Origin: Callorhinchus milii
Taxonomy: Eukaryota
Assembly: GCF_018977255.1 (NCBI RefSeq)
Contig: NW_024704771.1
Span: 868,001-932,000 of the forward strand
Length of the DNA: 64,000 nt
Reading direction: 5' to 3'
In this document: one piece after another, positions 12,901 to 50,771 of the stretch
Layout: each line of letters opens with the position of its first letter
How positions within the stretch are numbered: position 1 is the stretch's first letter
Notes under the pieces: model-generated
The model's database searches: none
Seen by the model: only the letters and a program-made list of their open reading frames with translations
Told to the model about the DNA's origin: nothing
Program-made: the position numbers and the translations under genes

Positions 12901-13597
12901 ACATTCCCCCCCACACAAACCCCTCCCCCACAGACACACAGACTCTCAGCCTTTTTGCGGATTCTGTTCCCAGGAGATGTCGATGTTTTACACAAAGGCT
13001 TCTCTCCCGGTGACGACGCTGAAGATCATCTTATTTATGATTGTAAAGGTGTCCGACAATAATGGTCTGATTCTCCCTCCAGTTACAGTCACTCTGGATC
13101 CTGACACAGCCCATCCCCGGCTCATCCTGTCTGAGGACCTGACCAGTGTGAGACGCGGAGACGAACTGCAGTCGCTCCCTGACTCCCCGAAGAGGTTTAG
13201 TAACTATCCCATTGTCCTGGGATCTGAGGGCTTCACATCGGGGAGACATTACTGGGAGGTGCAGGTGGGCAACAAGTCATGGTGGGCTGTGGGATTGGCC
13301 ACAGAGTCTGTCAACAGGAAACAAGCAATCACATTGTCACCAGAGGATGGGGTCTGGGGGGTGAGGCTGGTGGGTGGGGACTGTTATGAGGCTCTGACAT
13401 CACCCCGCACCCGCCTGTCCCTGACAGTGAGACCCGGGAAGGTCGGGGTTTACATGGACTATGAGGAGGGACAGGTGTCATTTTACAACGCTGACAACAT
13501 GTCTCATCTCCACACTTTCACCCAAACTTTCACTGAGAAACTTTATCCTCTGTTCAATCCCTGGTTTGGTTCTGACCCTCTGACAATCTGTCGGTGA
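701..13597 (+). CDS. Butyrophilin-like gene A, 5'-partial gene model (IgC-TM-8 mini-exons-B30.2); signal and IgV exons lie upstream of the window
   Basis: join(701..976,1660..1779,4479..4514,5912..5938,6502..6528,7478..7504,8022..8048,8527..8553,9665..9691,9896..9931,13083..13597). All exons have ag/gt ends and phase 1, and the frame is open to the TGA. The domain order is the canonical BTN architecture. Confidence 0.88.
1255..1440 (+). mobile_element. SINE fragment: tRNA-like head joined to a Deu-like core
   Basis: TAGCTCAGTGGTTAGAGCA A-box, then gtccttcagatgagacgttgaaccgagg...aggtggattttaaagatcc. Confidence 0.6.
1660..1779 (+). CDS. BTN gene A transmembrane exon
   Basis: ttacag|AGG...AAAG|gtaat, 120 nt. 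Encodes [40 protein letters not shown] (hydrophobic helix followed by a basic stop-transfer). Confidence 0.92.
1850..3200 (-). mobile_element. L2-clade LINE fragments (RT C-terminal region)
   Basis: Minus-strand peptides [23 protein letters not shown] and [11 protein letters not shown] match the intact L2 RT at 52641-53978. Confidence 0.85.
3490..4150 (-). mobile_element. L2 fragment, internally deleted tandem duplicate of ~2155-3070
   Basis: Near-identical blocks (e.g. gatctatactgagtt..gaggaaattt.ggctcatccagg); paralogous ORFs at 2877 and 3956. Confidence 0.8.
4479..4514 (+). CDS. BTN gene A cytoplasmic mini-exon 1 (36 nt, [12 protein letters not shown])
   Basis: Polypyrimidine tract + ccag acceptor, gtaagt donor, phase 1-1. 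Confidence 0.8.
5045..5385 (-). mobile_element. L2 3' fragment
   Basis: Minus-strand peptide [26 protein letters not shown]. Confidence 0.75.
5912..5938 (+). CDS. BTN gene A mini-exon 2 (27 nt, DQKYMKKTL)
   Basis: tttcttcctttag acceptor, gtaagt donor, phase 1-1. Confidence 0.8.
6502..6528 (+). CDS. BTN gene A mini-exon 3 (27 nt, ELXKQFTKS; one N base)
   Basis: tttcctttcag acceptor, AG|gtact donor (weaker), 27 nt, phase 1-1. Confidence 0.68.
6963..7274 (-). mobile_element. tRNA-Ala-derived SINE with L2-type tail
   Basis: Reverse complement has an A box, a TGC anticodon loop and a GGTTCAATTCCC B box; tail gaagcgctttgagacgtc...(att)n. Confidence 0.85.
7478..7504 (+). CDS. BTN gene A mini-exon 4 (27 nt, EWEIVGSCK)
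   Basis: ctgtttccttccag acceptor, gtaagt donor, phase 1-1. Confidence 0.75.
7512..7708. repeat. 25-bp tandem repeat (caccccacattacaggctggttata), ~8 copies
   Basis: Direct inspection; it starts immediately after the mini-exon 4 donor. Confidence 0.95.
8022..8048 (+). CDS. BTN gene A mini-exon 5 (27 nt, CCKDLLVGF)
   Basis: gttttctctcag acceptor, gtaaga donor, phase 1-1. Confidence 0.7.
8057..8414 (-). mobile_element. tRNA-derived SINE, same family as 6963-7274
   Basis: ctctaaccactgagctacaggact head on the reverse strand, plus the shared body and tail. Confidence 0.82.
8527..8553 (+). CDS. BTN gene A mini-exon 6 (27 nt, VKSRIHSYA)
   Basis: ttttctttcatttccag acceptor, CAG|gtaaga donor. It ends in ..YA, like the pre-B30.2 exons at 9896 and 39151. 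Confidence 0.8.
9665..9691 (+). CDS. BTN gene A mini-exon 7 (27 nt, GYKEVLTEL)
   Basis: ctttcttacag acceptor, gtaagg donor, phase 1-1. Confidence 0.78.
   Translation, partial: VTRRFSQN
9896..9931 (+). CDS. BTN gene A mini-exon 8 (36 nt, [12 protein letters not shown])
   Basis: cctttattttacag acceptor, CAG|gtaaga donor, in frame with the B30.2 exon. Confidence 0.8.
10040..10710 (-). mobile_element. L2 3'-end fragments, interrupted by C/A-rich sequence
   Basis: Minus-strand peptide [21 protein letters not shown]; tail ...gcactatacaaatccaagttgttg. Confidence 0.75.
10711..11166. repeat. 27-bp tandem repeat (gtgttagtgttggtgtcagtgctgtta), ~17 copies
   Basis: Direct inspection; it produces the spurious (VSAVSVSVG)n ORFs. 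Confidence 0.95.
11290..12930. repeat. C/A-rich degenerate satellite (cacaccctcacatccccc-like) in the last intron of gene A
   Basis: G-poor + strand with a recurring ccctcacatcccc unit; same family as 39200-50110. Confidence 0.92.
13083..13597 (+). CDS. BTN gene A terminal B30.2 (PRY-SPRY) exon
   Basis: ctccctccag acceptor. Encodes [19 protein letters not shown]...[14 protein letters not shown]...[16 protein letters not shown]...FTEKLYPLF, ending in TGA. Confidence 0.96.
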
Positions 13598-14343
13598 CGG
13601 TTAATGAGGAGGAAAATTTGACTATTATTTCCATGAGGTTTGGATAGTGCCGAGTGTTTGATTCTGTACTTCTCTCTCAGGTTTGAGCTGAGTTTGTGAC
13701 GGGAAGTGAAGGACGGGGCTGAGTGGGGTATCCCTGAGAGACGTCAGCTCCACATTGTATCCCGAACCGGGAAAGCCGTCTGTGGTCAGCGACACTGAGC
13801 TGCTGACACTGACACTGTGCCACAACACCGCACCTGCACATTCCAGTGTCAATACAGTAAACCCCGACTTACAGGACTCCGGGTGTCCGGGATACACAAC
13901 TGGACCAACCGGGATCCACAACAAATATAGTTGTAAAATTTCCGTGAGCCCTCCCTGTGCAGCGTCCCACAGGGTCAGCTCTCCTGTCACACTGAGCAGC
14001 CGCACCGTCCTCACTGGCCTTCACGCTCTGAGACAGGGATATATATCGCTGATATCTTTCTCTCCAGCAATGCCCAGTCTCACAGTCGGGGCTGTGCTCA
14101 GAATCTCACTGAAATCTCCCAAATCACTTTTATATCTATAAACAGGTGCCGTGTTGTTCCCCAGTGAGCGGCCGAGTATCACTGTGTATAAACACTGTGT
14201 ATTTTCAGTGACAGCTTTTATAATCCGTAACATTTCTCACTCACTGTAACAATCTTTAACCCTCACTAAACCGAGGTCACGTCTGTGTGGATATTAATAT
14301 CCAAAATATTGTCATTCACTTACAAAATACTCGAACAATTTAC

Positions 14344-14349
14344 AATAAA
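14344..14349 (+). terminator. Candidate polyadenylation signal of gene A
   Basis: AATAAA followed by a T/GT-rich stretch, at the same position in the 3' module as in the copies at 51742 and 59656. Confidence 0.5.
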
Positions 14350-14418
14350 TTTGTTTTGATATTATTTTATGTCGAATGATTGAACACAATCTGCACACAC
14401 TCCTCATTCTCTGATACA

Positions 14419-14700
14419 CACTCTAACCCTCACCCCGATACACACACCCTAACCCTCACCCCGATACACACACCCTTACCCTCACCCCCTGATACACACA
14501 CCCCTAACCCTCACCCCATGATACACACACCATTGACCCTCACCCCGACACACACACACCCCTAACCCTCACCCCCTGACACACACCCCTAACCCTCACC
14601 CCCTGACTCACACACCCCTAACCCTCACCCCCTGATACACACACCCTATCCCTCACCCCCCGATACACATACCCCTAAACCCTCACCCCCTGACACACAC
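14419..14700. repeat. ~29-bp tandem repeat (ccctaaccctcaccccctgatacacacac)
   Basis: About 9 degenerate copies, just past the gene A polyA signal. Confidence 0.85.
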
Positions 14701-14797
14701 CAAGAGCAACAAATTATATTTTCATAGCGCATTTCACGTCAGGACATCTCAAGGGGCTGTGATGTTAGGAATGCCAACCCGAGCTGGTGGTTGGGAT

Positions 14798-14850
14798 CAG
14801 GAAGTGACGTCCGGCAATGAGTTCACTGGGGATTTTGAAATGGCGCCTCC
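14798..14850. promoter_or_regulatory. Promoter-like motif cluster (ETS-CRE composite GGAAGTGACGT; YY1-like AAATGGCG)
   Basis: Motifs are visible at 14800-14810 and 14838-14845 in a locally CpG-enriched patch; no linked exon identified. Confidence 0.35.
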
Positions 14851-16678: not shown

Positions 16679-16823
16679 TAATAATCGTTGCATTTGATTT
16701 AGCACTTCACAGATTTGAGGCGTCTCAAAGTGCTTCACAGGATATAATGTAAAGTCAATTGACTGAAAAATAAAATATTTAAACTCCCACAGTAACACTT
16801 TATTACAGACACAGAAATACATT

Positions 16824-18106
16824 CAGGCCTTGGGGTGCGCTGATGATGGGGCAGTCGGGGTGGCTGCTCTGGGACAATCATTGACAAGTGTTTTGTGCTC
16901 TGGGTGGAGGAGGCCCAGGGCTGGAGCAGAGGGAAGTTTCTGGAAGGGCCCTGGATAGAGAGCAGACGAGGAGGGTGACAGGAGACAAGAACTGATTGTT
17001 ATAATAATTCTTACATTTGATATAGCACTTTATCACATCTTCCAGATGTCCCAAAGGGCTTCAGACAATATTGTGTAAAGTGAATTGACTGTATTTTGAG
17101 GGCAAAACGTGGCAACCAATTGCACAGAGGTGTTCCACAGTCATGGATTCAGTGACCAAATTCTTTTTTAAGGGATTATTCCCCCCAGAATGCGATTAAA
17201 ACTGGTTCCTATTGACTGCTTGGTAAACAGAGGCGTGTGCAGTAAGGAAAGTTGCCTCAGGTTTCTCCCCACTCGGGTATCGAACACGTGCTCGACAAGA
17301 GCTCAATCTGATATGTAATGTAGAGACAGAGAGAGAGAATAATAGTAACAATAAACCATACATTTGATATAACCACTTAACACTTATTCAACACATCTCA
17401 AAGGGCTTCACAGGATACACTCTAAAGCGAATGTGACTGTATATTTTGTGGGCAAAGCGCAGCAGCCGATTGTGCACAGCAGTGTCCCCACAAACAGCCA
17501 TGGATTGAAGCAACTAAATTATTATTGTTGTTGTAGGGATTAATTCCCCCGGAAAAGTGACCCGGCAATCGACGAACAACTGAGTGAAGTGAGAGAGAGG
17601 GAGTGAGAGAGAGTCAGAGAGAGGGAGTGAGAGTCAGAGAGAGAGCGAGTGAGAGAAAGAGTCAGAGAGAGAAGGAGGGAGTGAGAAAGAGGGCGGGGCA
17701 GGGAGGGCGGGGAAGGAGATGACAGGAAACAGGTAATAAACAGTAACTTGTTGACTTTCCTGTTGTTTCGGGGGAAATGACTGGTTCCTTCCTGTGCACC
17801 GGAAGCTGTCAATGCACAACCCAACCGGGACCTGGCGCTTTGTGTCCGAATTAACCGGTGTCCAACGTTACCCGAATACCGCGGCCGCCATTGTGTGCTG
17901 TTATATCCCGCGGTGACGCTGTGTCACCAACGGGTGGCGCTGCCTCGTGTGGTATGTGGTTCGATGCCGCGGTGACGCTGTGTCACCAACAGGTGGCGCT
18001 GCAGCCACTCCGCACTGTCAGTGATACACCGCCACCATCACAGAGATAGGGCGCTTTCACCCGCGCAGTGCATTGTGGCTCCCGGGCACCGCCATTGCTG
18101 CTGTTC
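16824..18106. repeat. Left arm of an inverted segmental duplication (partner 26507-27960)
   Basis: Reverse-complement match covers unique sequence, SINE remnants, the GA microsatellite and the CpG island, with scattered substitutions and indels. Confidence 0.9.
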
Positions 18107-18340
18107 CTTCTGCTCAGTGTCAGCGACACAAACCCCCGCACAGGCGGCGCTTCCTCTCGTCCCCGTCTCACCCCCTCCCTCTGGGGAAATGTCATCATTG
18201 TTATTATTATTACCTTCTGATCCGGGCCCAGGGGGAGGGTCACAGCCACAAACCTCCCAAACAAGTGGCTTCTGCTGATCTCTGGGTCTGGACACAGCCC
18301 CAAAGCTGAGAGTGGCAGCAGTTTGTGGGAGTGAGCGGTG
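17780..18340 (+). promoter_or_regulatory. CpG-island promoter/5' region of the TRIM pseudogene
   Basis: High CpG density, YY1-like GCCGCCATT, ETS-like CCGGAAG and two CTCF-like motifs, directly upstream of TRIM exon 1. Confidence 0.55.
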
Positions 18341-18949
18341 GAGGGGACACGGCTGCAGAGAGCAGCACCGGAGCTCAGCGGAGGGTCTCACTTGCCCCGT
18401 TTGCCCGGACCTGGTCAAGGGTCCGGTTTCTCTGGTTTGCGGCCACAGCTTCTGCCGCTCGTGTCTCGCAGGGCTTTGGGAGAGGCCGGAGGCTCACTCC
18501 TGCCCGGAGTGGCGCCAGGTGTGTCCGGGAGGGGAGCTGAGAGCAGGTCGACCAATGGATAATTTGGCTGAAAAAGCTCAAAATCTCAGTCTGGATCCGA
18601 AACGGGGAGAAAGGGAACACCGTTGTGACGATCATCGGGAAGAGCTGAAGCTGTTCTGTGAGACGGATAAGAAATTGATCTGTGAGATGTGTCTCATTTA
18701 TGCTGAGGAACAGAATCACAAATCACTCAGTGATGTCCATAGACAAAGCTGCTGAGATCTACAAAGGTACACAAGGAGCGGACTTTATAATGTGACTGCA
18801 ATTCTCTCTCTCTTTCTTGAGCCGAGTGTCTGACACACACGGAAACTATTGCTGTGTTTAAGAGAATCCAAAGCAGGTGGTGATTGAGATATAAGGGAGA
18901 AACTATTTCCACTGGTGGGTGGGTCGTAACCCGAGGATTTATAACAGTT

Positions 18950-19207
18950 AAAAGAAACAGAGGAGAGGTTTTTCCGCACAGCGTTTTTAGTGTCTGGAAT
19001 GCATTGCCTGAAAGGATGGAAGAAGCCGATTCAATAACAACTTTCAAGAGAGAAGCAGATAATTATTTGGGGAGGACAAGTTTGCAGGGCTATGGGGAGA
19101 GAGCGGGGGAGTGGGAGTGATTGGGAAAGCTCTTCTCAAAGAGCCGACACAGACACAATGTACCAAAAGGCCTCCTTCTGTGCTGTATAATTCTATGATT
19201 CTATGAT
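18950..19207 (+). mobile_element. CR1 LINE 3' end
   Basis: RT C-terminus VFSVWNALPERMEEADSITTFKRE, CR1-type 3'UTR and (attctatg)n tail. Confidence 0.8.
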
Positions 19208-19644
19208 ATGTTAACTGCACATGGAATATTGACCTGTGTCCCCGGAGGGACGCACTCTGTTTACAAATCTGTTGACAATTTGACACAGGCCGACAAGAGC
19301 CAAGGCTTGTGTATCCCAGAGTATAAGTCGGGGTATCTATTGAAGTTTAACCAACTAAACGGCATAACCGGCCATTGAGAGCGCTATCTGTCAGACTTCC
19401 CGCTGTGTGTTCTCTCTGGTCACATTGACACAGTTAACAATGTGTTTGTTTTGGTTAATTTCCATTTTGATTACAGGAGAAACTGAAATCGTATTTCAAC
19501 TTGGGTCTGAAGAGAAAGGATGTTGTTTTTCGAGCTTAGTTTGGGCAAAAAGAGAAGATTTCTGCCTTGAAAGTAAGTTGCGTGTGATAAGAGTCAGCAC
19601 TCTCACCTCTGAGCCAGAAGATTGTGGAATCCATCCCCACTACG

Positions 19645-19965
19645 GGCTGTCAGTCGTGTCTCTCTCTTTACTGTGTGATGTCTGGGCTCTCAGTCATGTC
19701 TCTCTATTTACCGTGTGATGTCTGGACTCTCAGTCATGTCTCTCTATTCACCGTGTGATGTCTGGGCTCAGTCGTGTTTCTCTATTTACCGTGTGATGTC
19801 TGGGCTCAGTCGTGTCTCTCTCTTTACCGTGTGATGTCTGGGCTCAGTCCTGTCTCTCTCTTTACCGTGTGATGTCTGGGGTCTCAGACGTGTCTCTCTC
19901 TTTACTGCGTGATGTCTGGAGTCTCAGTCGTGTCTCTCTCTTTAACGTGTCCCGTTGTGATGTCT
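19645..19965. repeat. 38-40-bp tandem repeat (ccgtgtgatgtctgggctcagtcgtgtctctctcttta), ~8 copies
   Basis: Unit starts at 19751, 19789, 19827 and 19865; the array ends just before the TRIM exon 3 acceptor. Confidence 0.92.
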
Positions 19966-20859
19966 GACGCCTCACTTTACAGGAACAGGCGAGGAGTCTG
20001 CAGAACGACGTCAGGGCTGAGTTTGCCGAAATGCACCAGAGCCTCAGTGACACGGAGCAGTGTGTAATGCGAGAGCTCAGAGAGTGAGAGGAGGAAATGT
20101 TATAGGGTTTGAAGAGGCGTTAAAATCTATAGACCCAGAATTAGTAACGTTACAGCGGCAAATAGATGAACAGGTCATGGGGTCCTTTCTGAGGGTAAGA
20201 AAAGGAGATTGTTATTATTTATGTAATAATAGTCCTTACATTTTATACAGCGCCTTTAATTTCCTTTTAATGTCTTAAAGTGATTCACAGTAAAATGTAG
20301 TGACTGTGTATTTTATAGACAAACACAACAACCAATTTGCACAGAAAGTGCCCCACAAACAGCAATGAAGTGAATGAGCAATTGTTTTTGGGAGTAACTC
20401 CCTTCACGTTTCCAGTCGTGTCCGGGATCTTTATCGTCCACCTGAACAGGCGCAACACCACAGGTTAACGTGTCATCCAAAGGACAGCCCTCAGCTCTGC
20501 AAAACTAACAACGTAACAGAGCTCAGCCCTTACACTTCCCTACAAAACACACAGTCACTACACTTTACGGTGAATCCAGTGAAGTGTTTGAGACGTCCTC
20601 CCAATGTGAAAGGCTCTGTACCAAATGCAAAGCTCCTTCTTCTCACCTTGTGTAAAGCTCCCTGAGCGAGTCACCGTGTGGAGATTGTTCCGCACGCGGA
20701 GGGTTAGCTGCTGTGACTCTGACCTCTCGGTGTTTGTTTCATTTCAGGAGGAAGATTCTCGGAAGATCAGGTCTGACGTTCTCTTCAAACAAACTGTTTC
20801 ACTCATTAATGTCAAAGCAGTAACCACGGGATCCACTCTGCTGCCTGTGCCCTTTCTAC

Positions 20860-21190: not shown

Positions 21191-21739
21191 AATAATAATC
21201 CTTACAACTGGAATAGCAGCTTTCACTACGGGATGACATCCCGGGATACACTGCAGTGACTGTGTATTTTGTGGGAGAACAAAACACATTGTGTCGTATT
21301 ACTCTTAAGGTAAAATCTTGTGACGTTCTTTGAGATATTTCGATGGTGTGATTTAGCCCGACATCAAAAACAAGGGTTATTATGGTCTGGGCGGGAGCGA
21401 GATGTATCCAGGGGTGATGGGGTTACATTTTATAGGCCGCTTCTCTGGAAAGTGGGAAATTTGGGTGCGTGTCAATCTGCCGAGCTTGGCAGCGTGATCT
21501 TGTCTGAGGTTTTCACCTTTACTTGGCAATGGCATTGCGGGTAAAGTGGTGTGTTCAGCCAAGATACGGAAATATACAAATTGGGTAAATGTGGGGATAA
21601 TTGCAAGTTGTGTAAAGTGTGAAAATTGCACAAATGCACACCGTCGCATTACATAATTGTTTGAATGAGGAACCGACTGGAGAAACCATATCAATGAATC
21701 ACCTAATTCACTACAAATGTCACTGACAGTGCTTTCAGC

Positions 21740-23544
21740 CACTGTGCCCCGAAGCTCTGGATTCCCTCCCTCAATCCCTCCGCCCATTGCCCCCTCCCTC
21801 CACACTTTCAAATCCCATCCAAAGACCTTACATTTTGATTGTGTTCACTGTCACCTCTCCCCTCCCTCTACCCCTGGATCGGGGTCAGACTCCACCTCTG
21901 TCAAGCGCTCTGGGACGCTGCCCCGCGTGAAGGACGCGATATAAATGCAAGTTGTTGAATATAAACTCCAGTCTAATAAGTGGAGACATTGCTATATGGG
22001 GCAGTGCTGCCGCCATCTGGTGGTGACAAGATGAACGGCAGTGGGTTCCAGGACCAACATCTGTCACTGAAGCACTCGCCCAGTCAGTCATCGGGTCCTT
22101 TTCCATGTGGTTTAACGATTCTTTTCACCTCTGTTGTTTCAGACACTCTTCTAAGGGCTTTACTAACGGTTCGACTATTTCTCTTCGACTTGTTTTATAT
22201 TCTCCCTTCATCAGTCCTCTATCACCTGACAGTATTTCTCTACAATGTTGTCAGTCTCCGAATGTTTGCATTTTTCTGGTGTTGGTGGACACAAAGTGCA
22301 GACAGTGGGAAAGGTAAGATTGAAGCCGGACAAAGCCAAACCCCCATGACGGTGGGGATGAGAGTAGAGACAATGATAGACAGCATCAGCTCAGGTAAAC
22401 GTCTCACATCTTCTGATGTTTAAAATGTGAATGATGTACATTTACTGATGCAAAAGCTGACAGTCTGTCATGAACAAGGAATGTCTCTGAGGGATTCTGC
22501 CTGAATATGACAAAGCTGTGCATCAGCCCGGCTCAGTCTGTAACACTCACACCCACACCAGGACTTTCAGCTCACAGTCTTCAGTGACCCTCTGGTACAG
22601 AGCTGAGGGAGTTAATATAAGGTCCTCTCTGTGCCTATTCAGGTGAATATAAAGATCTCACACTACTAATGAATAGAGAACTGTCTCTGTTACAAGAATC
22701 AAATCACTAAAGCTGGTCTGTCAGGGCTGACAGATTCTCCCATTCTGTCCTGAGGAGCAGTCCCTGTCCACACACGGTCTGTGCCCCAACCGCACTCCCG
22801 CCTGCAACTGTCCTGCTCCTCGAGCCCCTCACTCCTCTTTGTGTAATGTTTCTGTCTCTCTCAGCTCCGGCCTCTCCGACTCTGGATCCTGATACCAGGA
22901 CTCTGAGTATTTGGAATTCAGAGCGAGGAAGATTGGGATCGACACAAAATAAGTTTTGAAAAGGTTTCCGTGGGCCTTCGCTGTGTATCCTCCCGTGGGC
23001 TCCCCTCTCCTGTCACACTGAGCAGCCTCACCATCCTCACTGGCCGTCACAGGGGCCGGGGATACCCACTGTCACTCAGATTGTTTGAATCACTGATACA
23101 CTATCTCCTGTTCCTGGGATTCAAACAATTACAAATTATTGGTGTTTTGCAATAAAGCAGTAAATGCCGGGACCGACATTGGAATGACACTCAGCTGGAA
23201 ATTCCGTCTCTCCAGACGGGATCTCCCCCATTGGTCCGGCCTCGAGCCGGGGGTTCAGTGTAATGAGCCACTGTAGCCGCCAGACAGCACAATCAGCACC
23301 AGCACCGCAACAGCTCGTCTGGATTAACATCATTCAGAGCATCAGAGGAACCTGACACCCAATGTGTGGGAGCAAAACGTGAGCCATCTTTGTAAAGCTC
23401 ATCGCCAGCTCATCTCTGTGCTCGTGTTGGGAGAATCTGACTTGCCATCCAGTGTGTGAGCTCACACGCTCTGAGACAGGGATATATATCGCTGATATCT
23501 TTCTCTCCAGCAATGCCCAGTCTCATAGTCGGGGCTGTGCTCAG
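21740..23544 (+). repeat. Segmental duplication unit (L2 tail + TRIM 3' exons + 3'UTR module); partner ~57585-59380
   Basis: Colinear high similarity, e.g. paralogous ORFs 21980/57947, 22829/58686 and 23136/58977. Confidence 0.92.
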
Positions 23545-24310
23545 CATAAGAGAGAGAATCCATCTTACTGCAATTATCAATGCAACGAGCATTATGATTT
23601 GAACAATTGTGATAAAAGCCGTAACAGAGAGTGCTGTCCAGCATTGCAAACTGTCTGCCATCATCTGGGTGTTCCATCCAAATGTTGGCTTGAGTGGTTC
23701 AGCCCCAGGTGGTCCTGTTGTAAGATGTTCAGATGTTTCTGTGAGGTGAATTCCCAGCCCAGTGTAGCCCGCAAGTTTGTGGATGGCAAACGGATATGAT
23801 GTCCGAAGTGGGCGATTGCCTCCAATTCCTCTCGGTATAGGTCCGAGTAAAGCTACACACGAGTGGAGTTACGTATGATGAAGGGATAGAGAATTTGTTC
23901 CCCAATCTGTACTTCGAAATGTAGGGTAAAGCATCCCATAGGCCTGGTCAGGGGGCAATTTTATCTGCCATACTGGAAGGAAGTTTCAGTGGTGACATAA
24001 CAATAAACAGCTTGACCGCGGTATATGTACTCGGTACAAACCCAATGGGAAGTCAGAGAAAGTTGGCATCAAGATGACACTTGTCTAATCATGATGCCGC
24101 AGGTGGATATCTTCCGTGGGGTGGGGCAGGCCCATTTCTGCTGCTTTAAAACACAATCGGTAAGGTCGACCCCTTACCGGGTATCATATACAATGGTAAC
24201 AAAACCAGGTGCAGTTATATACTGTACCCAATGGCCCTGCCTGATTGCTCCTAAAGGATGGAGTTGGTACAGTGTCTCCCTGTCCCTGTTCACTGGCACC
24301 ATTCTCACCC
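23545..24310 (-). pseudogene. Decayed retroviral env-like fragment (TM-subunit ectodomain + transmembrane helix), foamy/class-III-like cysteine pattern
   Basis: Manual minus-strand translation: VPVNRDRETLYQLHPLGAIRQGHWVQYITAPGFV..DLTDCVLKQQKWACPTPRKISTCG..CQL..YCYVTTETSFQYG.NCPL..GCF..VQIG; then, after a frameshift, WTALSVTAFITIVQIIMLVALIIAVRWIL. It carries several in-frame stops. Family assignment is by motif recall only. Confidence 0.55.
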
Positions 24311-25902: not shown

Positions 25903-26331
25903 NNNNNNNNNNNNNNNNNNNNNNNNNNNNNNNNNNNNNNNNNNNNNNNNNNNNNNNNNNNNNNNNNNNNNNNNNNNNNNNNNNNNNNNNNNNNNNNNNN
26001 NNNNNNNNNNNNNNNNNNNNNNNNNNNNNNNNNNNNNNNNNNNNNNNNNNNNNNNNNNNNNNNNNNNNNNNNNNNNNNNNNNNNNNNNNNNNNNNNNNNN
26101 NNNNNNNNNNNNNNNNNNNNNNNNNNNNNNNNNNNNNNNNNNNNNNNNNNNNNNNNNNNNNNNNNNNNNNNNNNNNNNNNNNNNNNNNNNNNNNNNNNNN
26201 NNNNNNNNNNNNNNNNNNNNNNNNNNNNNNNNNNNNNNNNNNNNNNNNNNNNNNNNNNNNNNNNNNNNNNNNNNNNNNNNNNNNNNNNNNNNNNNNNNNN
26301 NNNNNNNNNNNNNNNNNNNNNNNNNNNNNNN
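25903..26331. other. Assembly gap (429 N)
   Basis: Run of N. Confidence 1.
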
Positions 26332-34095: not shown

Positions 34096-34185
34096 TTGAT
34101 TATATTTGATCACAAATCTCTGTGTGTAATGATCTGATTTGCTGTGTTGTAACCAGTTCTGATCTCATTGTGAAGGTCCTCGAAG

Positions 34186-34243
34186 ATGAGCTGCAAACAC
34201 TGTATTCAGGTCCTGTGGCTTGTGCTTCCCCTCTCACTGACTG
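34186..34243 (+). CDS. BTN gene B signal-peptide exon ([19 protein letters not shown])
   Basis: Acceptor aaccag at 34156, GAAGATGA start, G|gtaagg donor, 58 coding nt. Confidence 0.88.
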
Positions 34244-40200: not shown

Positions 40201-43200
40201 CCCGCCATTCAATCATGGCTGATCTTCTAATCTAACTCCAGCTAATAACCTGACGCTGCCTTATCCCCATATCCCTTAATACCTTTGACAATAAGAAATC
40301 TATCCATCTCAGTCTTGAATATGTTCAAGGACGGAGCGTCAACAGCCCTTTGGGGTAGTGAGTTCCATACATTCACTGCCCTTTGAGTGAAGAAGTTCTT
40401 CCTCAACTCAGTGCGAAAGGGCTGCCTCTGATTTTAAGGTTGTGACCCTGGTTTTAGTTTCTCCAACCGGGGACACAATCTCCCACTATCTACTCTATCT
40501 GCCCTTTGATGATCTTATAGGTTTCTATAAGATCCCCTCTAATTCTTCTATATTCTAGAGAATATAGGCCCAAATTGTTCAGCCTATCCTCGTAACTCAT
40601 CCCCTTCATCCCTGGTACTAACCCAGTAAATCTACGCTGCAGCCCTCCGAGGCAAGTACATCCTTCCTTAAATGAGAAGACCAAAACTGCCCCCAGTATT
40701 CCAGGTGTGGTCTCACCAGAGCCCTATACAGTGGCAGCAACACTTCCCTACTCTTATACTCTAATCCTTTCATAATGAATGCTAACATACCGTTCCCCTT
40801 CCTAATTGCTGCTGCACCTGCAGACTAACTTTCTGTGACTGGTGTACAAGGACACCCGAGTCCCTCCGGACACTGACACATTCCAATCTCTCCCCTTCTA
40901 AAAGATAACCCACTCTACTGTTTTTGCTACCGAGGCGGATGACTTGGCACTTCCCTACATTGTACTTCATCGGCACCTACCTGCCCAGTCACCTCACCTC
41001 TCTATGTCTCACTGCATTGTTTTTAATGTCGTCCTCTGTGTTGACACTTCCTCCTCGTTTTGTTTTGTGTCATCCGTGAATTTAGATATATTAACTTCGA
41101 TGTCCTCATCAGATCGTTGGTGTAGATGGTAAATAGCTGAGGCCCAGGGACTGATCCTTGTGGCACTCCACTGGTCACATCCCACCAATCCGAAAAGGAC
41201 CCGTTTATCCCTAATCTGTGTTTCCGACCCGTTAACCATTCCCCAATCCACGTTAATATGGTCCCCAATTCCATGGGCCCTTATCTTTTGGACTAACCTT
41301 TTATGCGGCACCTTATCGAATGCCTTCTGGAAGTCCAAATAGACCACATCCACTGATTCACCCATATCCACTTTACTGGAAATGTCCTCAAAAAACTCTC
41401 TGAGATTTGTCAAACATGACTTCCCTTTTGTAAAGCCGTGTTGACTCGGCCTAATTATATTGTGCCCTAAATACCGCACTACCACATCCTTAATCAACGA
41501 TTCTAAAATGTTTCCCATCACTGATGTGAGACTAATTGGTCTATAGTTCCCCATCTTTTCCTTTCCACCTTTTTTAAACAGTGGTGTGACATTTGTGATC
41601 TTCCAGTCCATGGGCACTGCTCCAGAATCCAAGGAATTTTGGAAGATCAGACACAGGGCCTCCACTATCTCATACGCTCCTCTTCTCAAACCCTGTGATG
41701 CAAACCATCCGGACCGGGGGATCCGTCACTGTTTAGTGCTCACAGTTTCCCGACACCAATTCTCTGCTGATGGAAATTTCCCTAAGTTGCTCCCTGTCCC
41801 TCACGTCCCCCCCCACCCCACACGCACCCACACGTACTCCCCACACGCACCCTCACGCCCCCCACACGCACCCTCACATACTGCCCACACACACCCTCAC
41901 GCCCCCCACACAAACACCCTCACAACCCCCCACACACACCATCATGAGCCGCCACACACACCCTCACCTCCCCCCAACACACAACCTCACGACCGCCCAC
42001 ACGCACCTGCACGTCCCCCCCACGACCACCCTCACGTCTCCCCCACACGCACCGTCATTACGCCACCACACACCCTCACATCCCCCACACGCAGCCTCAC
42101 GTCTCCCCCACACAAACCTCACGTGCCCCCCACAAGCAGCCGCATGTCCCTCCCACATGCACCCTCACCTCCCAACCACACGCACCCTCACTCACACACG
42201 CATACTCACGAGCCTCACAAATGCACACTCACATTCCTCCACAACCATGACATCCCCCGCACACGCACCCTCACGTTCCTCCATACACACCCTCATGTTG
42301 CTCCACATGAACCCTCACATCCCCCCCACACACACCCTCATGTTCCTCTACACACACACCTGTTCCATCACCCCCACACACACTCACGTCCCATACAAGA
42401 ACCCTCACGTCACCCCCACACACAGACTCACGTACCCCACACACGCACCCTCACGTCCCCCACACATGCACCCTCACGTCCCCCACACACGCACACTCAT
42501 GTCCCCAAGACACGCGCCCTCACATCCCCCCCACATGCACCCTCACATCCCCCACACGCACCCTCACATCCCCCACATGCACCCTCATGTACCTCCACAC
42601 GCACACTCACGTTCTCCCATACGCACACTTACCTCCACCCCACACGCACCCTTACGTCCCCCCCACACGTACACTCTCATGTCCCCCCCACACGAGCCCT
42701 CACATCCCCCACACGCACCCTCATGTTCCTCCACATGAACCTTCATGTCCACCGCACACACACCCTCACGCTCCCCCGCCTACACACGCCCTCACGCTCC
42801 CCCCGACACTAATCCTCATGCCCCCCCCTCCACACACACGCTCACGTGCCCCCCATACACACCCCCTCACATCCCCTCCACACACACCCTCACATCCCGG
42901 CCACAGACACACATTCAGCCCCACAACACACACCCTCACATCCCCCCAACTCATCCTCACACCACCACCTAACACACAAAATCACATCTACCCCCCAACA
43001 AACACCCTCACATCCCCCCACAAACACCCTCACATCCTCCCACACACACCCTCACATCCCCCCACACACACCCTCACATCCCCCACACACACCCTCACAT
43101 CCACTCCCACACACCCTCACGTCTCCCCCCACACATTCCTCCCACACACACCCTCACATGCCCCCACACACACCCTCACATCCCCACACACACCCTCACA

Positions 43201-46200
43201 TCCCCCCACACACAACCTCACATCCCCCACACACACCCTCACATCCCCCCACACACAACCTCACATCCCCCCCACACAGCCTCACATCTCCCCCCACACA
43301 TTCCCCCCACACACACCCTCACATCCCCCCCACACACCCTCACATCACTCCCACACACACCCTCACATACCCCAGAGACACCCTCACATCCCCCCACACA
43401 CACCCTCACATCCACTCCCACACACACCCTCACATCCCCCACACACACCCTCACATCCCCCCCCACACACCCTCACATCCACTCCCACACACCCTCACAT
43501 CCCCCCAACTCACCGTCACATCCCCCCACACAGGCCCTCACATCCCCCGACAAACACCCTCACATCCCCCCACACACACCCTCACATCCCCCCACACACA
43601 ACCTCACATCCCCCCACACACACCCTCACATCCCCCCCACACACACCCTCACATCCCCCCACACACACCCTCACATCCCCCCCACACACACCCTCACATA
43701 CCCCCGCACACACCCTCACATCTCCCCCCAAACATTCCCCCCACACACACCCTCACATCCCCCCCACACACACCCTCACATCCCCCCACACACACCCTCA
43801 CATCCACTCCCACACACCCTCACATCCCCCCCACACACACCCTCACATCCCCCCACACACACCCTCACATCCCCCCACACACACCCTCACATCGCCCCCA
43901 CACCCACACATGCACCCTCACATTCCTCCACACGCACCCTCATGTTCCCCCCACGAAGCACACTCACGTCCCTCACACACGCACCCTCATGTTCCCCCAA
44001 GCGCACCCTCATGTCCCCCCCACGAAGCACACTCACGTCCCTCACACACGCAGCCTCATGTTACCCCACACGCACACTCACGTCCCCTACACATGCACCC
44101 TCGTGTCCCCCGCACACGCACCCTCAGACAGCCTCATGTCAACTCCACACGCACCCTCACGTCAACCCCACACCCAGCATGTCTTGACCCTCACGCAGCC
44201 TCACATCCCTCCCACATGCACCCGCATGTCTCCCGCACAAGCACCCTCACACAGCGACACGTTCACATCACACGCACCCTCACATCCCCTGCACACGCAC
44301 CCTCATGTCGCCTCCACACGCACCCTCAAGCAGCCTCATGTTCACCCCAAATGCACCCTCACGTCCCTCCGCACACGCAACCTCACGTCCCCCCACATGC
44401 ACCCTCACATACCCCCCACAGGCACCCTCACCTCCCCCCAACACGCACCCTCACGTCACCCCCACATGCATCCTCACGTCACACCACACGCACACTCACG
44501 TTCCCCCCCCACACACCCTCACGTCTCCCACACACACCCTCACGTACCCCACACGCACCCTCACGTCCCCACCACACACACCCTCATGTCCCCCCCACCC
44601 GTACACTCTCACGTCCCCCCCACATGCGCCCTCATATCCCCCACACATGTACCCTCACATCCCCCACATGCACCCTCATGTTCCTCCACATGAACCCTCA
44701 CGTCCCGTGCACACGCACCCTCACTCTCCCCCCCCCACTAATCCTCACGCCACCCCCCTCCACAAGCACGCTCACTCGCACCCCCACACACACCCTCACA
44801 TCCCCCACACACACCCTCACATCCACTCCCACACACCCTCACATCCCCCCACACACACCCTCACATCCACTCCCCCACACACACCCTCACATCCCCCCAC
44901 AAACCCCTCACATCCCCCCACACACAGCCTCAGATCCCCCCACACACACCCTCACATCACCCCACACACACCCTCACATCCCCCCACACACCCCTCACAT
45001 CCCCCACACACCCTCACATCCCCCCCACACACACCCTCACATCGCCCCCACACACACCCTCACATCCACCCCACACACACACCCTCACATCCACTCCCAA
45101 CACCCTCACATCCCCCCCACACACACACGCACATCCACTCCCACACACCCTCACATCCGCCCCACACACACTCACATCCCCCCCACACACACCCTCACAT
45201 CCCCCCCACACACACCCTCACATCCCCCCCACACACACACGGACATCCACTCCCACACACACTCACATCCCCCCTACACACACCCTCACATCCCCCCACA
45301 CACACCCTCACATCCCCCCACACACACCCTCACATCCCCCCACACACACCCTCACATCCCCCCCACACATAGCCTCACATCCCCCCCACACATAGCCTCA
45401 CATCCCCCCCACACACACCCTCACATCCCCCCACACACAGCCTCACATCCCCCCCCACACCCTCACATCCCCCACACACAGCCTCACATCCCCCCACACA
45501 CACCCTCACATCCCCCCACACACAGCCTCACATCCCCCCACACATAGCCTCACATCACCTCCACACACACCCTCGCATCCCCCTACACACACCCTCACAT
45601 CCACTCCCACACTCACCCTCACATCCACTCCCACACACACCCTCACATTCCCCCACCACACAACCAATCATATCCCCCCACACACATACACCCCCTCACA
45701 TTCCCCCACCACACAAACCCTCACATCACCCCCACAGACACACCTTCAGACCCCCAACACTTCCCCCCAACTCAGCCTCACCCCACCCCCCAACACACAA
45801 AATCACATCTACCCCCCGACAAACACCCTCACATCCCCCCTCACACACCCTCACACCCCCACACACCCTCACATCCCCCACACATACCCTCACATCCCCC
45901 GCACATACCCTCACATCCCCCACACATACCCTCACATCCCCCACACATACCCTCACATCCCCCCACACATACCCTCACATCCCCCCACACACACCCTCAC
46001 ATCCCCCCACACACACCCTCACATCCCCCCACACACACCCTCACATCCCCCCCACACACACACCCCCACATCCCCCCCACACACCCTCACATCCCCCCAC
46101 ACACCCTCACATCCCCAACACACACACCCTCACATCCCCCCACACACACTCACATCCCCCCACACACACCCTCACATCCCCCCACACACACCCTCACATC

Positions 46201-49200
46201 CCCCCACACACACACCCTCACATCCCCCCACACACACACCCTCACATCCCCCCACACACACCCTCACATACCCCCTCACACACCCTCACATCCCCCCCAC
46301 ACACCCTCACATCCCCCACACACACACCCTCACATCCCCCCTCACACACCCTCACATCCCCCACACACACCCTCACATCCCCCCACACACACACCCTCAC
46401 ATCCCCCACACACACACCCTCACATCCCCCCACACACCCTCACATCCCCCCACACACACCCTCACATCCCCCCACACATACCCTCACATCCCCCACACAC
46501 ACACCCCACACACCCCCCACACACCCTCACATCTCCCCACACACACCCTCACATCCCTCCACACACACCCTCACATCCCCCCACACACACACCCTCACAT
46601 CCCCCCCACACACCCTCACATCCACTCCCACACACCCTCACATCCATCCCCATACACACCCTCACATCCACTCCCACATGAGCCCTCACATTCCCCCACA
46701 CGCACCCTCATGTCCCCCCCACGAAGCACACTCACGTCCCTCACACACGCAGCCTCATGTTACCCCACATGCACACTCACGTCCCCTGCACATGCACCCT
46801 CGTGTCCCCCGCACACGCACCCTCAGACAGCCTCAAGTCAACCCCACACGCAGCATGTCTTGACCCTCACGCAGCCTCACATCCCCCCCACACGCACCCG
46901 CATGTCTCCCGCACAAACACCCTCACACACACCCTCACATCTCCTGCACACGCACCCTCATGTCGCTTCCACACGCACCCGCAAGCAGCCTCATGTTCAC
47001 CCCAAATGCACCCTCACGTCCCCACCACACACACCCTCATGTCCCCCCCACCCGTACACTCTCACATCCCCCCCACATGCGCCCTCATATCCCCCACACA
47101 TGCACCCTCACATCCCCCACACGCACACTCACGTTCCCCCACACGCACCCTCACGTTCCTCCACATGCACACTCACGATTCCCTGCACACGCACCCTCAT
47201 GTCCCCCGCACACGCACCCTCAGACAGCCTCATGTCAACTCCACATGAACCCTCACGCCACCCCCACACGCAGCATGTCTTGACCCTCACGGAGCCTCAC
47301 GTCCCCCCCACAAGCACCCTCACACAGCATCACGTTCACCTCACACGCACCCTCACATCCCCTGCACACACACCCTCATGTCGCCTCCACACACACCCTC
47401 AAGCAGCCTCACGTTCACCCCAAACGCACCCTCATGTCCCCAGCACACGCTCAATCACGTCCCCCCACACGCACCCTCACGTACACCCCACAGGCACCCT
47501 CGCCTCCCCCCAACATGCACCCTCACGTTACCCCCACATGCATCCTCACGTCACCCCCACACGCACCCTCATGTCACCCCCACACGCAACCTCACGTCAT
47601 CCCCACACGCACCCTCACATTCCCCCATACGCACCTTTTTGTCATCCCCATACGCACCCTCATGACACCCGCACAAGCACCCTCACACAGGCTCACGTTC
47701 GACTCACACGCACCCTCATGTCCCCCGCACACGCACCTTCAAGCAGCCTCACGTCCCCCCCACACGCACCCTCACATTCCCCCACACGCACCTTTTTGTC
47801 ATCCCCACACGCACCCTCATGTCCCCCGCACACGCACCTTCAAGCAGCCTCACGTTCACCCCACACGCACCCTCACATTCCCCGCACACGCACACACACG
47901 TCCCCCTACACACGCACCCTCAAATCACCCCCACATGCACCGTCACGTCCCTCTCACAAGCACCCTCACCTCACCTCACCTCCACACGCACCCTCACATC
48001 CACCCCACACGCAGCCTCACATCTCCCCTATATGCACCCTCACATGCCCCGCTACACGCAGCCACGCGTTCCCCCCACACGCACCCTCACGTCCCCCCCA
48101 CACGCACCCGCATGTCTCCCGCACAAGCACCCTCACATCTCCTGCACACGCACCCTCATTTTGCCTCCACATACACCCTCAAGCAGCCTCATGTTCACCC
48201 CAAATGCACCCTCTCGTCCCCCCACACGCGCAGCCGCGCATCCCCCCCACACGCACCCTCACGTCCCCCCCACAAGCAACCACACCTCACCCCCACACGC
48301 ACCCTCACGTCACCCCCACATGCATCCTCACGTCCCCCCCACACGCACCCTCACATTCACCCCACACACAGCCTCACGTCTCCCCCATACGCACCCTCAC
48401 GTGCCCCCCCACACATAGCCACACGTCACACCCACATGCATCCTCACGTCCCCACCACACGCACATTCGTGTCCCCCACACGCACCCTCATGTTCCTCCA
48501 CATGAACCCTCACGTCCCGTGCACACGCACCCTCACGATCCCCCCCCACTAATCCTCACGCCCCCCCCTCCACAAGCACGCTCACGTGCACCCCCACACA
48601 CACTCACATCCCCCCACACACACCGTCACATCCACTCCCACACACGCCCTCACATCCCCCCACACACACCCTCACATCCCCCCCACACGCACCCTCACTT
48701 CCCCCCCACACGCACCCTCACCTTCCCCCCACACGCACCCTCACCTTCCCCCCACACGCACCCTCACATCACCCCCACACGCATCCTCATGTCACCCCCA
48801 CACGCACCCTCACGTCCACCCCACACACACCTTTTTGTCATCCCCACATGCACCCTCAAGTCTCCCGCACACACCCTCACGTCCCACCCACATGAACCCT
48901 CACTTCCCCCCCACCCTACGCACCGTCACGTCACCCCCACACGCAACCTTACGTCACCCCCGCACACGCCCTCTCAAGTCCCCTCTGCACGCGCACCCTC
49001 ACATCCCCACCAAACGCACCCTAACGTTCCTCCACAACACCCTCATGTCCCCCCACACACACTCACGTTCATGCACACTCACACTCACGTCCCCCGCACA
49101 CGTACCCTCACATCCCACCACATGAACCCTCACGTCCCCCCACATGCACCCTCACATGCACCCTCACGTCCCCCCCATACACAACCTGACTTGAGCCCCA

Positions 49201-50771
49201 CACACCGTCACTTCCCCCCCACCCCCCACACGCACACTCACCTCCAGCCCACATGCACCCTCACGTCCTCCCCACGCACACCCTCATGTTCCCACAACGC
49301 ACACCGTCACCTCCCTCCCACACGCACACTCACATCCCCCACACACCCTCATGACCCGCCCACACGCACACTCACATGCCCTCACGTACCCCCACACACA
49401 TCCTCATGTCGCTCCGACATGCACCCTTACTTCCCCCACACACTAACCTCACGTACCCCCACACGCACCCTCACATCCCCCCCACATGCACCCTCTCGTC
49501 CCCCAACACATGCAGCCCCACTTCACCCCACAAGCACCCTTGCTTCCCCCCTACACACCCTCAGCCCCCCACACACCCTCAGCCCCCCCCACACACCCTC
49601 AGCACCCCCCACACACCCTCAGCCCCCCCACACACCCTCAGCCCCCCCACACACCCTCAGCCCCCCACACACCCTCAGCCCCCCCACACTCCCTCAGCCC
49701 CCCCCACACACCCTCAGCCATCCCCCACACACCCTCAGCCCTCTCCACACACACTCAGCCCTCTCCACACACCCTCAGCCCTCCCCACACACCCTCAGCC
49801 CTCTTACACCCTCAGCACCCCCCACATACCATCAGCCCCCCCACACACCCTCAGCCCCCCCACACACACCCCCATACACACACCCTCAGCCCCCCACACA
49901 CACCCTCAGCCCCCCCACACACACCCTCAGCCCCCCCACACACACCCTCAGCCCCCCCCCACACACACCCTCAGCCCCCCCACACACACCCTCAGCCCCC
50001 CCACACACACCCTCAGCCCCCCCACACACACCCTCAGCCCCCCCACACACACCCTCAGCCCCCTGACGCACACCCACACATTCCCCCCCACACAAACTCC
50101 TCCCCCACAGAGACACAGACTCTCAGCCTTTTTGCGGATTCTGTTCCCAGGAGATGTCGATGTTTTACACAAAGGCTTCTCTCCCGGTGACGACGCTGAA
50201 GATCATCTTATTTATGATTGTAAATGTGTCCGACATTAATGGTCTGATTCTCCCTCCAGTTACAGTCACTCTGGATCCTGACACAGCCCATCCCCGGCTC
50301 ATCCTGTCTGAGGACCTGACCAGTGTGAGACACGAAGACGAAGAGCAGCCGCTCCCTCACTCCCCGAAGAGGTTTAGTAACTATCCCATTGTCCTGGGAT
50401 CTGAGGGCTTCACATCGGGGAGACATTACTGGGAGGTGCAGGTGGGCAACAAGTCAATGTGGGCTGTGGGATTGGCCACAGAGTCTGTCAACAGGAAACA
50501 ACCAATGAGGTGGTCACCAGAGGGTGGGGTCTGGGGGGTGGAGCTGTGGGACGGGGTCTATTATGCTCTGACATCACCCCCCACCCGCCTGACCCTGACA
50601 GTGAGACCCGGGAAGGTCGGGGTTTACATGGACTATGAGGGGGGACAGATGTCATTTTACAACGCTGACAACATGGCTCATCTCCACACTTTCACCCAAA
50701 CTTTCACTGAGAAACTTTATCCTCTGTTCAATCTCTGGTTTGGTTCTGAACCTCTGACAATCTGTCGGTGA
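34186..50771 (+). CDS. Butyrophilin-like gene B, complete model, 452 aa (signal-IgV-IgC-TM-2 mini-exons-B30.2)
   Basis: join(34186..34243,34686..35033,35250..35525,37138..37257,37875..37892,39151..39177,50260..50771) = 1359 nt. All junctions are gt-ag and phase 1, with no internal stop. Confidence 0.93.
34415..34560 (-). mobile_element. CR1 3'UTR fragment
   Basis: atcatagaattatacagcacaaaaggaggccattcagccc, the reverse CR1 tail. Confidence 0.65.
34686..35033 (+). CDS. BTN gene B IgV exon
   Basis: 348 nt. Encodes [56 protein letters not shown], a hallmark BTN IgV. Confidence 0.96.
35250..35525 (+). CDS. BTN gene B IgC exon
   Basis: 276 nt. Encodes [25 protein letters not shown]; ttccag/gtcagt sites. 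Confidence 0.95.
36100..36640 (+). mobile_element. Old L2 fragments
   Basis: ccccatttccaacctgcccttcctctccaaggtgctgg matches the 5' part of the L2 at ~52610. Confidence 0.6.
36649..37047 (-). mobile_element. tRNA-derived SINE (family of 15652-15958)
   Basis: Reverse tail and body; degenerate head near 37000-37047. Confidence 0.7.
37138..37257 (+). CDS. BTN gene B transmembrane exon
   Basis: 120 nt. Encodes [40 protein letters not shown]. Confidence 0.92.
37563..37700. repeat. 12-bp tandem repeat (cccagctcagac)
   Basis: Direct inspection. Confidence 0.85.
37875..37892 (+). CDS. BTN gene B mini-exon (18 nt, DLEKRV)
   Basis: tttgtatcctccag acceptor, gtaagt donor, phase 1-1. Confidence 0.75.
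37968..38180 (-). mobile_element. CR1 3'UTR fragment
   Basis: catagaatcatagaattgaacagcacaaaaggaggccattcggccc. Confidence 0.7.
39151..39177 (+). CDS. BTN gene B pre-B30.2 mini-exon (27 nt, GLKRKNTYA)
   Basis: ttctttcttcttgattccag acceptor, CAG|gtaaga donor. Confidence 0.82.
39200..50110. repeat. ~11-kb C/A-rich degenerate satellite (core cacaccctcacatcccccc; ccctcagccccc variant at ~49556-50065) filling the last intron of gene B
   Basis: Continuous low-complexity array, interrupted only by the CR1 at 40147-41795; it generates long His/Pro/Thr pseudo-ORFs. Confidence 0.95.
40147..41795 (-). mobile_element. 5'-truncated CR1-clade LINE (RT) inserted in the satellite
   Basis: [69 protein letters not shown]; frameshifted; CR1 3'UTR near 40150-40330. 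Confidence 0.93.
50260..50771 (+). CDS. BTN gene B terminal B30.2 (PRY-SPRY) exon
   Basis: Encodes [19 protein letters not shown]...[10 protein letters not shown]...FTEKLYPLF, ending in TGA; paralog of 13083-13597. Confidence 0.96.

Follow-up and report, generated by a model that had tools for sequence, protein, structure and literature searches.

Two butyrophilin-like B30.2 exons of Callorhinchus milii differ by amino-acid replacements only, a probable outcome of diversifying selection on a background of exon-scale gene conversion

The sequence examined here is a 64-kb stretch of the genome of Callorhinchus milii (elephant shark, a holocephalan or chimaera), positions 868,001 to 932,000 of contig NW_024704771.1, which we refer to as the window. 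It carries two tandem butyrophilin-like (BTN) genes with an Ig ectodomain, a transmembrane segment, juxtamembrane mini-exons and a cytoplasmic B30.2 domain encoded by the last exon. These last exons, called A in gene 1 and B in gene 2, differ at 23 codons and every one of these differences changes the amino acid. We consider it probable that this pattern results from diversifying selection on the ligand-binding face of the B30.2 domain, acting on a background that is kept young by exon-scale gene conversion.

13083 to 13597, plus strand: exon A, terminal B30.2 (PRY/SPRY) exon of gene 1, stop codon included; Pfam PRY 5e-25 and SPRY 1e-26, AG acceptor, open to TGA
50260 to 50771, plus strand: exon B, terminal B30.2 exon of gene 2, stop codon included; Pfam PRY 3e-24 and SPRY 7e-24

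Both exons are preceded by a polypyrimidine tract and an AG acceptor in phase 1, and both end in TGA; no other B30.2 exon was found in the 64-kb window. A sequence-only reading of this DNA had counted by hand 19 differing codons outside one short loop, all of them non-synonymous and most of them in three patches. Global protein and codon alignment (170 comparable codons, one 1-codon indel) returned exactly these 19 codons and the three patches, together with four differing codons within the indel loop (VGGDCYE in A, WDGVYY in B). Not one of the 23 is silent, so the machine check that the reading had proposed for itself bore out the hand count. The exons are 86% identical as protein and 94% identical as DNA. 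Their 32 nucleotide substitutions (13 transitions and 19 transversions) are distributed over codon positions 1, 2 and 3 as 12, 14 and 6, and many of the changes are adjacent double substitutions. Within the differing patches, unchanged codons are identical between A and B at their third positions. V132, which is M in B, is the sole difference among residues of the framework that are invariant or nearly invariant in the family. In a neutral simulation, in which as many transitions and as many transversions were placed randomly over the exon, the mean was 7.5 silent codons; the probability of none at all was 2.5e-4 when the whole exon was taken and 1.35e-3 when the loop was left out. Nei-Gojobori counting (Sd 3/123, Nd 29/387; pS 0.024, pN 0.075; dN/dS 3.2; Fisher P = 0.028) is less extreme than the simulation because three codons with multiple hits allow a synonymous step.

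The proteins closest to the B30.2 exons of the window all come from Callorhinchus milii. The open reading frame (ORF) found in the window and several of its relatives map to one 4.1-Mb scaffold (MU249860.1 of GCA_018977255.1), on which TRIM (A33/NF7-like) and BTN1A1-like genes, with related B30.2 exons, are densely clustered. More than 100 B30.2 proteins of this species are 65-86% identical, many of them encoded on this scaffold, as in a lineage-specific multigene expansion. Eleven further exons were taken from it as paralogue DNA, while close paralogues present only in UniRef (P0002-P0006, P0008 and P0010) were used at the protein level only.

The absence of silent differences is true for A and B, but its strength as evidence had been overstated. 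Compared in all ten pairs, the five closest copies have 0-6 silent and 16-28 replacement codons per pair, with ratios of non-synonymous to synonymous divergence (dN/dS, or omega) of 0.73-3.18, and A-B is the extreme of this distribution and not a typical pair. Replacement excess is nevertheless widespread, omega being above 1 in nine of the ten pairs. Site models were applied to twelve exons on an IQ-TREE codon tree, using our own code for M1a and M2a, which reproduced the M0 likelihood of IQ-TREE. A single ratio for all sites (M0) gave an omega of 0.845. M2a was strongly favored over M1a (likelihood-ratio test statistic, LRT, 96.3; P 1e-21), with an omega of 0.18 at 58% of sites and of about 5 at 15% of sites. 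The LRT was 74 once indel-adjacent columns were removed, and three segments analyzed each on its own tree gave 44.7, 16.8 and 27.0.

Comparison of gene 2 with its two nearest paralogues places this signal within the protein. dS is alike across exons (0.02-0.12), whereas dN is 0.012-0.029 in IgC, 0.03-0.05 in IgV and 0.07-0.09 in B30.2, so that B30.2 is the fastest-changing part of these proteins. Amino-acid identity between gene 2 and the genes at two other loci of the cluster, L002 and L003, is 78-88% in B30.2, 91-93% in IgV and 94-97% in IgC, and that of the transmembrane exon is also above B30.2. The transmembrane exon itself shows 0 silent and 6-7 replacement changes in the same two comparisons.

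The B30.2 pocket of human BTN3A1 senses phosphoantigens in the cell and reports them to gamma-delta T cells. Of the solved structures, BTN3A1 B30.2 (PDB 4N7I, 5ZXK) is also the one closest to exon A in sequence (E 5e-52, about 49% identity), without gaps in the alignment from residue 3 to residue 147. An AlphaFold model of exon A has a mean confidence (pLDDT) of 96.4 and superposes on TRIM21 PRYSPRY and BTN3A1 B30.2 with TM scores of 0.97-0.98 at 0.9 Å. Position n of exon A corresponds to BTN3A1 residue n+309, as follows.

A 41-43: BTN3A1 W350, H351, Y352
A 69: BTN3A1 H378
A 82-85: BTN3A1 W391, V392, K393, M394
A 103: BTN3A1 R412
A 109: BTN3A1 R418
A 159: BTN3A1 R469

Sites with a posterior above 0.9 for omega above 1 are 25, 29, 41, 67, 69, 74, 82, 85, 97, 103, 113, 159 and 161-163. 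Six of them (41, 69, 82, 85, 103 and 159) occupy pocket positions of BTN3A1, namely W350, H378, W391, M394, R412 and R469, while 25 and 29 flank or sit in the beta2-beta3 loop, variable loop 1 (VL1). Selected sites in VL1 and at pocket positions, with M2a favored, correspond to diversifying selection of the type known from TRIM5alpha and finTRIM, with the caveat that recombination is present. The differences between A and B themselves follow the same distribution: those at 82-85, 103 and 109 are at pocket positions, those at 26-34 are in VL1, and those at 160 and 67 are one residue from R469 and two residues from H378, respectively. A set defined as VL1 plus six pocket residues ±2 accounts for 13 of the 23 differences where 5.9 would be expected (P = 0.0017), in agreement with the earlier suggestion that the changes lie on the binding surface. 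Column entropy over 88 vertebrate homologues is 2.19 bits at the differing positions and 1.11 elsewhere (P = 9e-7). A simple count of loops and strands by DSSP, a crude measure that says little here, puts 16 of the 23 differences in non-strand positions, which make up 60% of the domain.

The basic pocket of BTN3A1 consists of H351, H378, K393, R412, R418 and R469 (PMC4303140). The aligned residues are Y42, A69, T84, E103, R109 and N159 in A and Y, A, R, Y, P and N in B. The pocket is thus kept in neither copy, so neither A nor B is a phosphoantigen sensor of the kind that BTN3A1 represents.

The remaining exons of the two genes and the one assembly gap of the window are as follows.

670 to 981, plus strand: gene 1 IgC exon (BTN-type, C2-set_3), open frame; Pfam C2-set_3 8.9e-22
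1632 to 1778, plus strand: gene 1 transmembrane exon, 90% identical to residues 1-49 of RefSeq model P0194; hydrophobic stretch, GT donor
4478 to 9930, plus strand: gene 1, nine juxtamembrane mini-exons of 27-36 bp, collinear with P0194 residues 50-136 at 82-100% identity, mostly with AG/GT borders
4478-4513, 5706-5732, 5911-5937, 6501-6527, 7477-7506, 8024-8053, 8526-8555, 9664-9696 and 9895-9930, plus strand: approximate bounds of these nine mini-exons
25903 to 26331, no strand: assembly gap (N run), intergenic, outside both gene models
34186 to 34243, plus strand: gene 2 exon 1, signal peptide
34683 to 35033, plus strand: gene 2 exon 2, IgV; Pfam V-set 2.3e-11, AG/GT borders
35250 to 35525, plus strand: gene 2 exon 3, BTN-type IgC; Pfam C2-set_3 ("BTN3A2-like Ig-C") 3.3e-23
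37138 to 37257, plus strand: gene 2 exon 4, transmembrane; hydrophobic stretch
37875 to 37892, plus strand: gene 2 exon 5, 18-bp mini-exon; the surrounding 175 bp are 100% identical to L002, AG/GT borders
39151 to 39177, plus strand: gene 2 exon 6, 27-bp mini-exon

The butyrophilin identity proposed from the sequence is well founded, since an IgV exon (seen in gene 2), a BTN-type IgC exon, a transmembrane exon with mini-exons and a single-exon C-terminal B30.2 domain are all present. The seven exons of gene 2, with AG/GT borders, give an intact ORF of 453 amino acids (aa) that is 91% identical to the RefSeq BTN model P0198, and the exons of gene 1 are collinear with model P0194. Two short mini-exons of heptad type follow the single predicted transmembrane segment in gene 2 and nine in gene 1. 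No second IgV was found in the window by regular-expression and tblastn searches, and the IgV exon of gene 1 is upstream of the window start. Joining of the exons in one transcript is predicted from the RefSeq models of paralogues (P0156, P0198 and P0194). An ORF that begins at an intronic ATG (MSMFYTK...) was rejected as a genuine stand-alone protein, its ATGs being lost in L002. Public annotation presents several paralogous exons (P0002-P0005) likewise as stand-alone proteins of about 205 aa from an intronic ATG; because L002 lacks this ATG and gene 2 is fitted by a complete BTN model of seven exons, such stand-alone models look like truncated gene models.

N runs occur at three places in the window, as single letters at 6507 and 6821 and as the gap. 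The N at 6507 is inside the gene 1 mini-exon 6501-6527, which reads ELXKQFTKS. The gap is 12.3 kb past exon A and 7.9 kb ahead of gene 2 exon 1, it touches no exon of either model, and both compared exons are uninterrupted sequence. The scaffold join underlies only the adjacency, co-orientation and 37-kb spacing of the two genes and leaves the comparison of A and B unaffected.

The two genes do not share a single history over their length. Amino-acid identity between them is only 34% in IgC and 32% in the transmembrane exon, while B30.2 dS is 0.025 and the intron segment ahead of the exon is nearly identical. The parts of the window relevant to this contrast are the following.

12893 to 13082, plus strand: intron segment of about 190 bp before exon A, part of the converted unit, 98% identical to 50070-50259
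50070 to 50259, plus strand: matching intron segment before exon B, pairing with 12893-13082
11315 to 12922, plus strand: C-rich minisatellite of 22-23-bp units, about 69 copies, adjoining the conserved intron segment of exon A (Tandem Repeats Finder, self-BLAST)
41816 to 50093, plus strand: the same C-rich minisatellite, about 368 copies over 8.3 kb, making up most of the last intron of gene 2 (Tandem Repeats Finder)
14416-14700 and 50922-51376: further C-rich minisatellite arrays

The upstream intron of A and B shows 4 differences in about 190 bp (5/191 when aligned with MAFFT), a divergence of 2.1-2.6%. The homology ends 21 bp past the stop codon and, on the upstream side, inside the C-rich minisatellite. 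Ancient divergence of IgC and transmembrane exons next to near-identical B30.2 exons and introns indicates that the exon with its flanks was recently copied between old paralogues. The low silent divergence between A and B is therefore largely due to recent exon-level gene conversion between otherwise ancient genes, which the sequence-only reading had missed. The same intron segment precedes the B30.2 exons of L002, L003 and a further locus, L008, and the C-rich minisatellite also lies upstream of these three exons. Both B30.2 exons of the window are bracketed by such arrays, whose consensus is about CCCCACACACACCCTCACATCC, and this minisatellite may be the substrate of exon-scale exchange. 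A 92%-identical pair of blocks (14022-14450 and 51420-51848) was considered as a neutral yardstick and rejected, as it has a third copy at 59.3 kb and another in L008 and behaves as a dispersed repeat.

Shared states among paralogues are also arranged as a mosaic. The four close copies, A, B, C (from L002) and D (from L003), have parsimony-informative sites in conflict (AC|BD 7, AB|CD 4, AD|BC 3). A shares an 11-residue patch and GGDCYE..SPR with C, whereas B shares EEQPLP, G-VY and SPP with D and with copy N. Many of the states that distinguish A from B are thus common to other paralogues in conflicting patterns and derive from a shuffled family pool, not from 19 new mutations. L008, on the same scaffold, is a segmental duplicate and a hybrid of the two genes: its positions 5795-34877 align to 1425-10542, 12789-13628 and 51193-58832 of the window. 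It has a gene-1-like 5' part (90-95% identical), then a B30.2 exon closer to B (90.6% at the amino-acid level), and after it sequence that is 96-99.2% identical to what follows exon B downstream in the window. The arrangement looks like the outcome of a deletion or insertion of about 37 kb (the 3' side of A, a TRIM-like piece and gene 2) through exchange between B30.2 exons. Together with the site conflict and the mosaic patches, this hybrid is consistent with domain-wise conversion.

Combining these observations, we propose the following history. Genes 1 and 2 are old paralogues, as the IgC and transmembrane exons, about one third identical, show. The last exon, with about 190 bp of the preceding intron and 21 bp after the stop codon, was copied recently from one lineage to the other, presumably by gene conversion or unequal exchange, as a unit bounded by C-rich minisatellites, and this copying reset silent and intronic divergence to about 2-2.5%. 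Residues of the binding face, in VL1 and at positions equivalent to the BTN3A1 pocket, would keep or regain different amino acids because selection favors paralogues with different binding specificities, while short conversion tracts may carry part of the variation between paralogues. The selective agent could be a set of intracellular ligands derived from pathogens or stress, and by analogy with BTN3A1 their binding may be relayed to the Ig ectodomain.

Several results weigh against selection as the explanation. The A-B pair by itself is weak evidence, given the Fisher P value above, and the close pair B-N has an omega of 0.73. Site models give false positives under recombination, which is clearly present here, and per-segment trees lessen this problem only partly; in addition, our M1a/M2a code fixes relative branch lengths and uses naive empirical Bayes (NEB), not Bayes empirical Bayes (BEB), posteriors. 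The strong diversifying selection claimed earlier is upheld by M2a, also on per-segment trees, but a regional test in the style of Hughes and Nei is only weakly positive, with a binding-set dN/dS of 1.8 in the four close copies (bootstrap 5% at or below 0) and of 0.9 in all twelve. The placement of the changes on one face is suggested by the BTN3A1 alignment and by secondary structure. Furthermore, dS in the four close copies is 3.5 times higher in the binding set than elsewhere (0.097 vs 0.028), which fits imported older tracts as well as it fits selection. Such tracts are the basis of an explanation without selection, in which the exon was homogenised recently, the differing patches are micro-conversion imports from more distant paralogues, and the zero silent count is sampling luck. 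This explanation would account for the patch states common to other paralogues (A with C, B with D and N), for the conflict among informative sites, for the many adjacent double substitutions and for the 2-6 silent codons in other pairs. It sits less easily with the identical third positions of unchanged codons in the patches, which are unlike old imported tracts, and it moves the replacement excess to the donor pool, where whole-exon omega is likewise above 1 in nine of ten pairs. M2a is still favored with per-segment trees, and the sites that vary match those at which a homologue of solved structure contacts its ligand. We therefore regard a mosaic without selection as unlikely, and conversion is better understood as a carrier than as a full explanation.

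Relaxed constraint was also considered, with one or both exons as decaying relics, no longer spliced or expressed, and the replacement excess as noise. In RefSeq, exon B seems not to be connected with the BTN exons upstream of it and stands as an ORF of 205 aa of its own, starting in the intron (P0001, window 50154-50771); this too is a point against our explanation, in which splicing over the 11-kb minisatellite intron is predicted by reference to paralogues. The last introns are full of kilobases of minisatellite and contain a reverse-transcriptase fragment, and comparison with the more distant paralogue E gives a whole-exon omega of about 0.8, with exon divergence equal to intron divergence. 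Against decay, both frames are open with intact acceptors, and gene 2 is intact in all its seven exons, as gene 1 is in its mini-exons. Substitutions are strongly non-uniform, with 58% of sites at an omega of 0.18 and the nearly neutral model M1a rejected, the framework is conserved apart from V132, and 0 silent codons against 7.5 expected rejects an omega of 1 for A-B. Decay thus appears quite improbable. An artefact, by assembly or base-calling errors or by a collapsed or mis-joined duplicate near the gap, might be suspected in a repeat- and satellite-rich region with an inverted repeat alongside a gap, but the exons are in long unbroken sequence far from the gap, the 32 differing positions respect the reading frame, and most of the differing states recur at independent loci of the same scaffold. 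Errors would neither avoid silent positions nor gather on binding loops, and we give this possibility hardly any credence.

Diversifying selection on an exon rejuvenated by conversion has parallels in other gene families. Positive selection on B30.2, with sites in the variable loops that make up the binding surface and above all in VL1, was reported for teleost finTRIM genes (van der Aa et al. 2009, PMC2657112). The Callorhinchus milii cluster resembles finTRIM and primate TRIM5alpha/TRIM22 in its large lineage-specific expansion, in selection on B30.2 loops and in the shuffling of the exon to another gene class. It differs in that the carriers are transmembrane butyrophilin-like genes of a chimaera, located beside TRIM genes in the same cluster and known here from sequence. 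No finTRIM counterpart had been found, as of 2009, in the early elephant shark draft (PMC2657112). In zebrafish NLR-B30.2 genes (Howe et al., 10.1101/022061), B30.2 has been homogenised between groups of genes that remain distinct in their other domains; domain-wise gene conversion combined with amino-acid diversity of B30.2 is common to both cases, but the partner domains are NACHT-LRR there and an Ig ectodomain with a transmembrane segment here, where the converted unit is bounded by minisatellites. Human BTN3A1 has the same overall gene architecture, and the selected sites are the positions that line its ligand pocket, yet the basic pocket is kept in neither A nor B. Peptide-binding regions of class I and II molecules of the major histocompatibility complex (MHC) also combine a replacement excess confined to ligand-contact codons with a conversion-homogenised background and motifs shuffled between copies. 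Unlike in MHC, the diversity described here is between paralogues of a germline array and, as far as seen, not between alleles, and the domain is cytoplasmic.

Positive selection on B30.2 loops together with exon shuffling is therefore already established, in primate TRIM5alpha/TRIM22, teleost finTRIM and NLR genes. What sets the present case apart is that the genes are butyrophilin-like, that the sites coincide with the BTN3A1 pocket and that minisatellites bound the exon unit. A 2026 survey names butyrophilins of Callorhinchus milii and gives no selection analysis, and our literature search found no paper on this cluster or on selection in its genes. Our results add a cartilaginous fish to teleost finTRIM and NLR genes and primate TRIM5 as a case in which the B30.2 exon diversifies and is also shuffled from one gene class to another. 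If holocephalan BTN-like genes diversify at pocket-equivalent positions, inside-out sensing via this pocket would be old, general and evolvable and not a speciality of placental mammals. The paralogues may also prove useful as a ready natural variant set for ligand searches.

A more speculative extension, which we put forward only tentatively as rather unlikely, is that in chimaeras a single hypervariable B30.2 "cassette" (the exon with about 190 bp of intron, bracketed by minisatellites) circulates by conversion or unequal exchange among BTN-like subfamilies and possibly neighboring TRIM genes. The minisatellites would act as its recombination substrate, and the cluster would form one germline-diversified repertoire of sensors for intracellular ligands, wired to different outputs, either an Ig ectodomain at the cell surface or a ubiquitin ligase. 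If true, ligand sensing by the BTN B30.2 pocket and its diversification would date to the base of jawed vertebrates.

A number of other features were found in the window. Between the two BTN genes, positions 17959-20194 (plus strand) contain TRIM-type exon-like pieces (B-box, coiled coil) that are 57-80% identical to residues 1-230 of model P0184; no B30.2 exon follows them ahead of gene 2, and the gap is 5.7 kb downstream. An inverted repeat of about 1.3 kb (16824-18129, plus strand, and 27960-26488, minus strand; 92-95% identical) has its right arm 157 bp from the gap, and this arm holds a copy of the first P0184-like exon (26508-26576, minus strand). Pfam searches of ten other long ORFs of the window gave reverse-transcriptase fragments only. 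Reverse-transcriptase ORFs are located downstream of gene 2 (52641-53975, plus strand; RVT_1 1.6e-30) and by the minisatellite in its last intron (41012-41689, minus strand; 3.1e-16). A third BTN-type signal-peptide exon (57467-57529, plus strand) is 71-74% identical to those of P0155 and P0164 and has no Ig exon after it in the window; the 1.8 kb that follow it (57578-59387) are a 96% direct repeat of 21737-23547. Within gene 1, the long intron holds two more minisatellites, at 10710-11167 (27-bp unit, 17 copies) and at 7512-7708 (25-bp unit, 8 copies, 99% identity).

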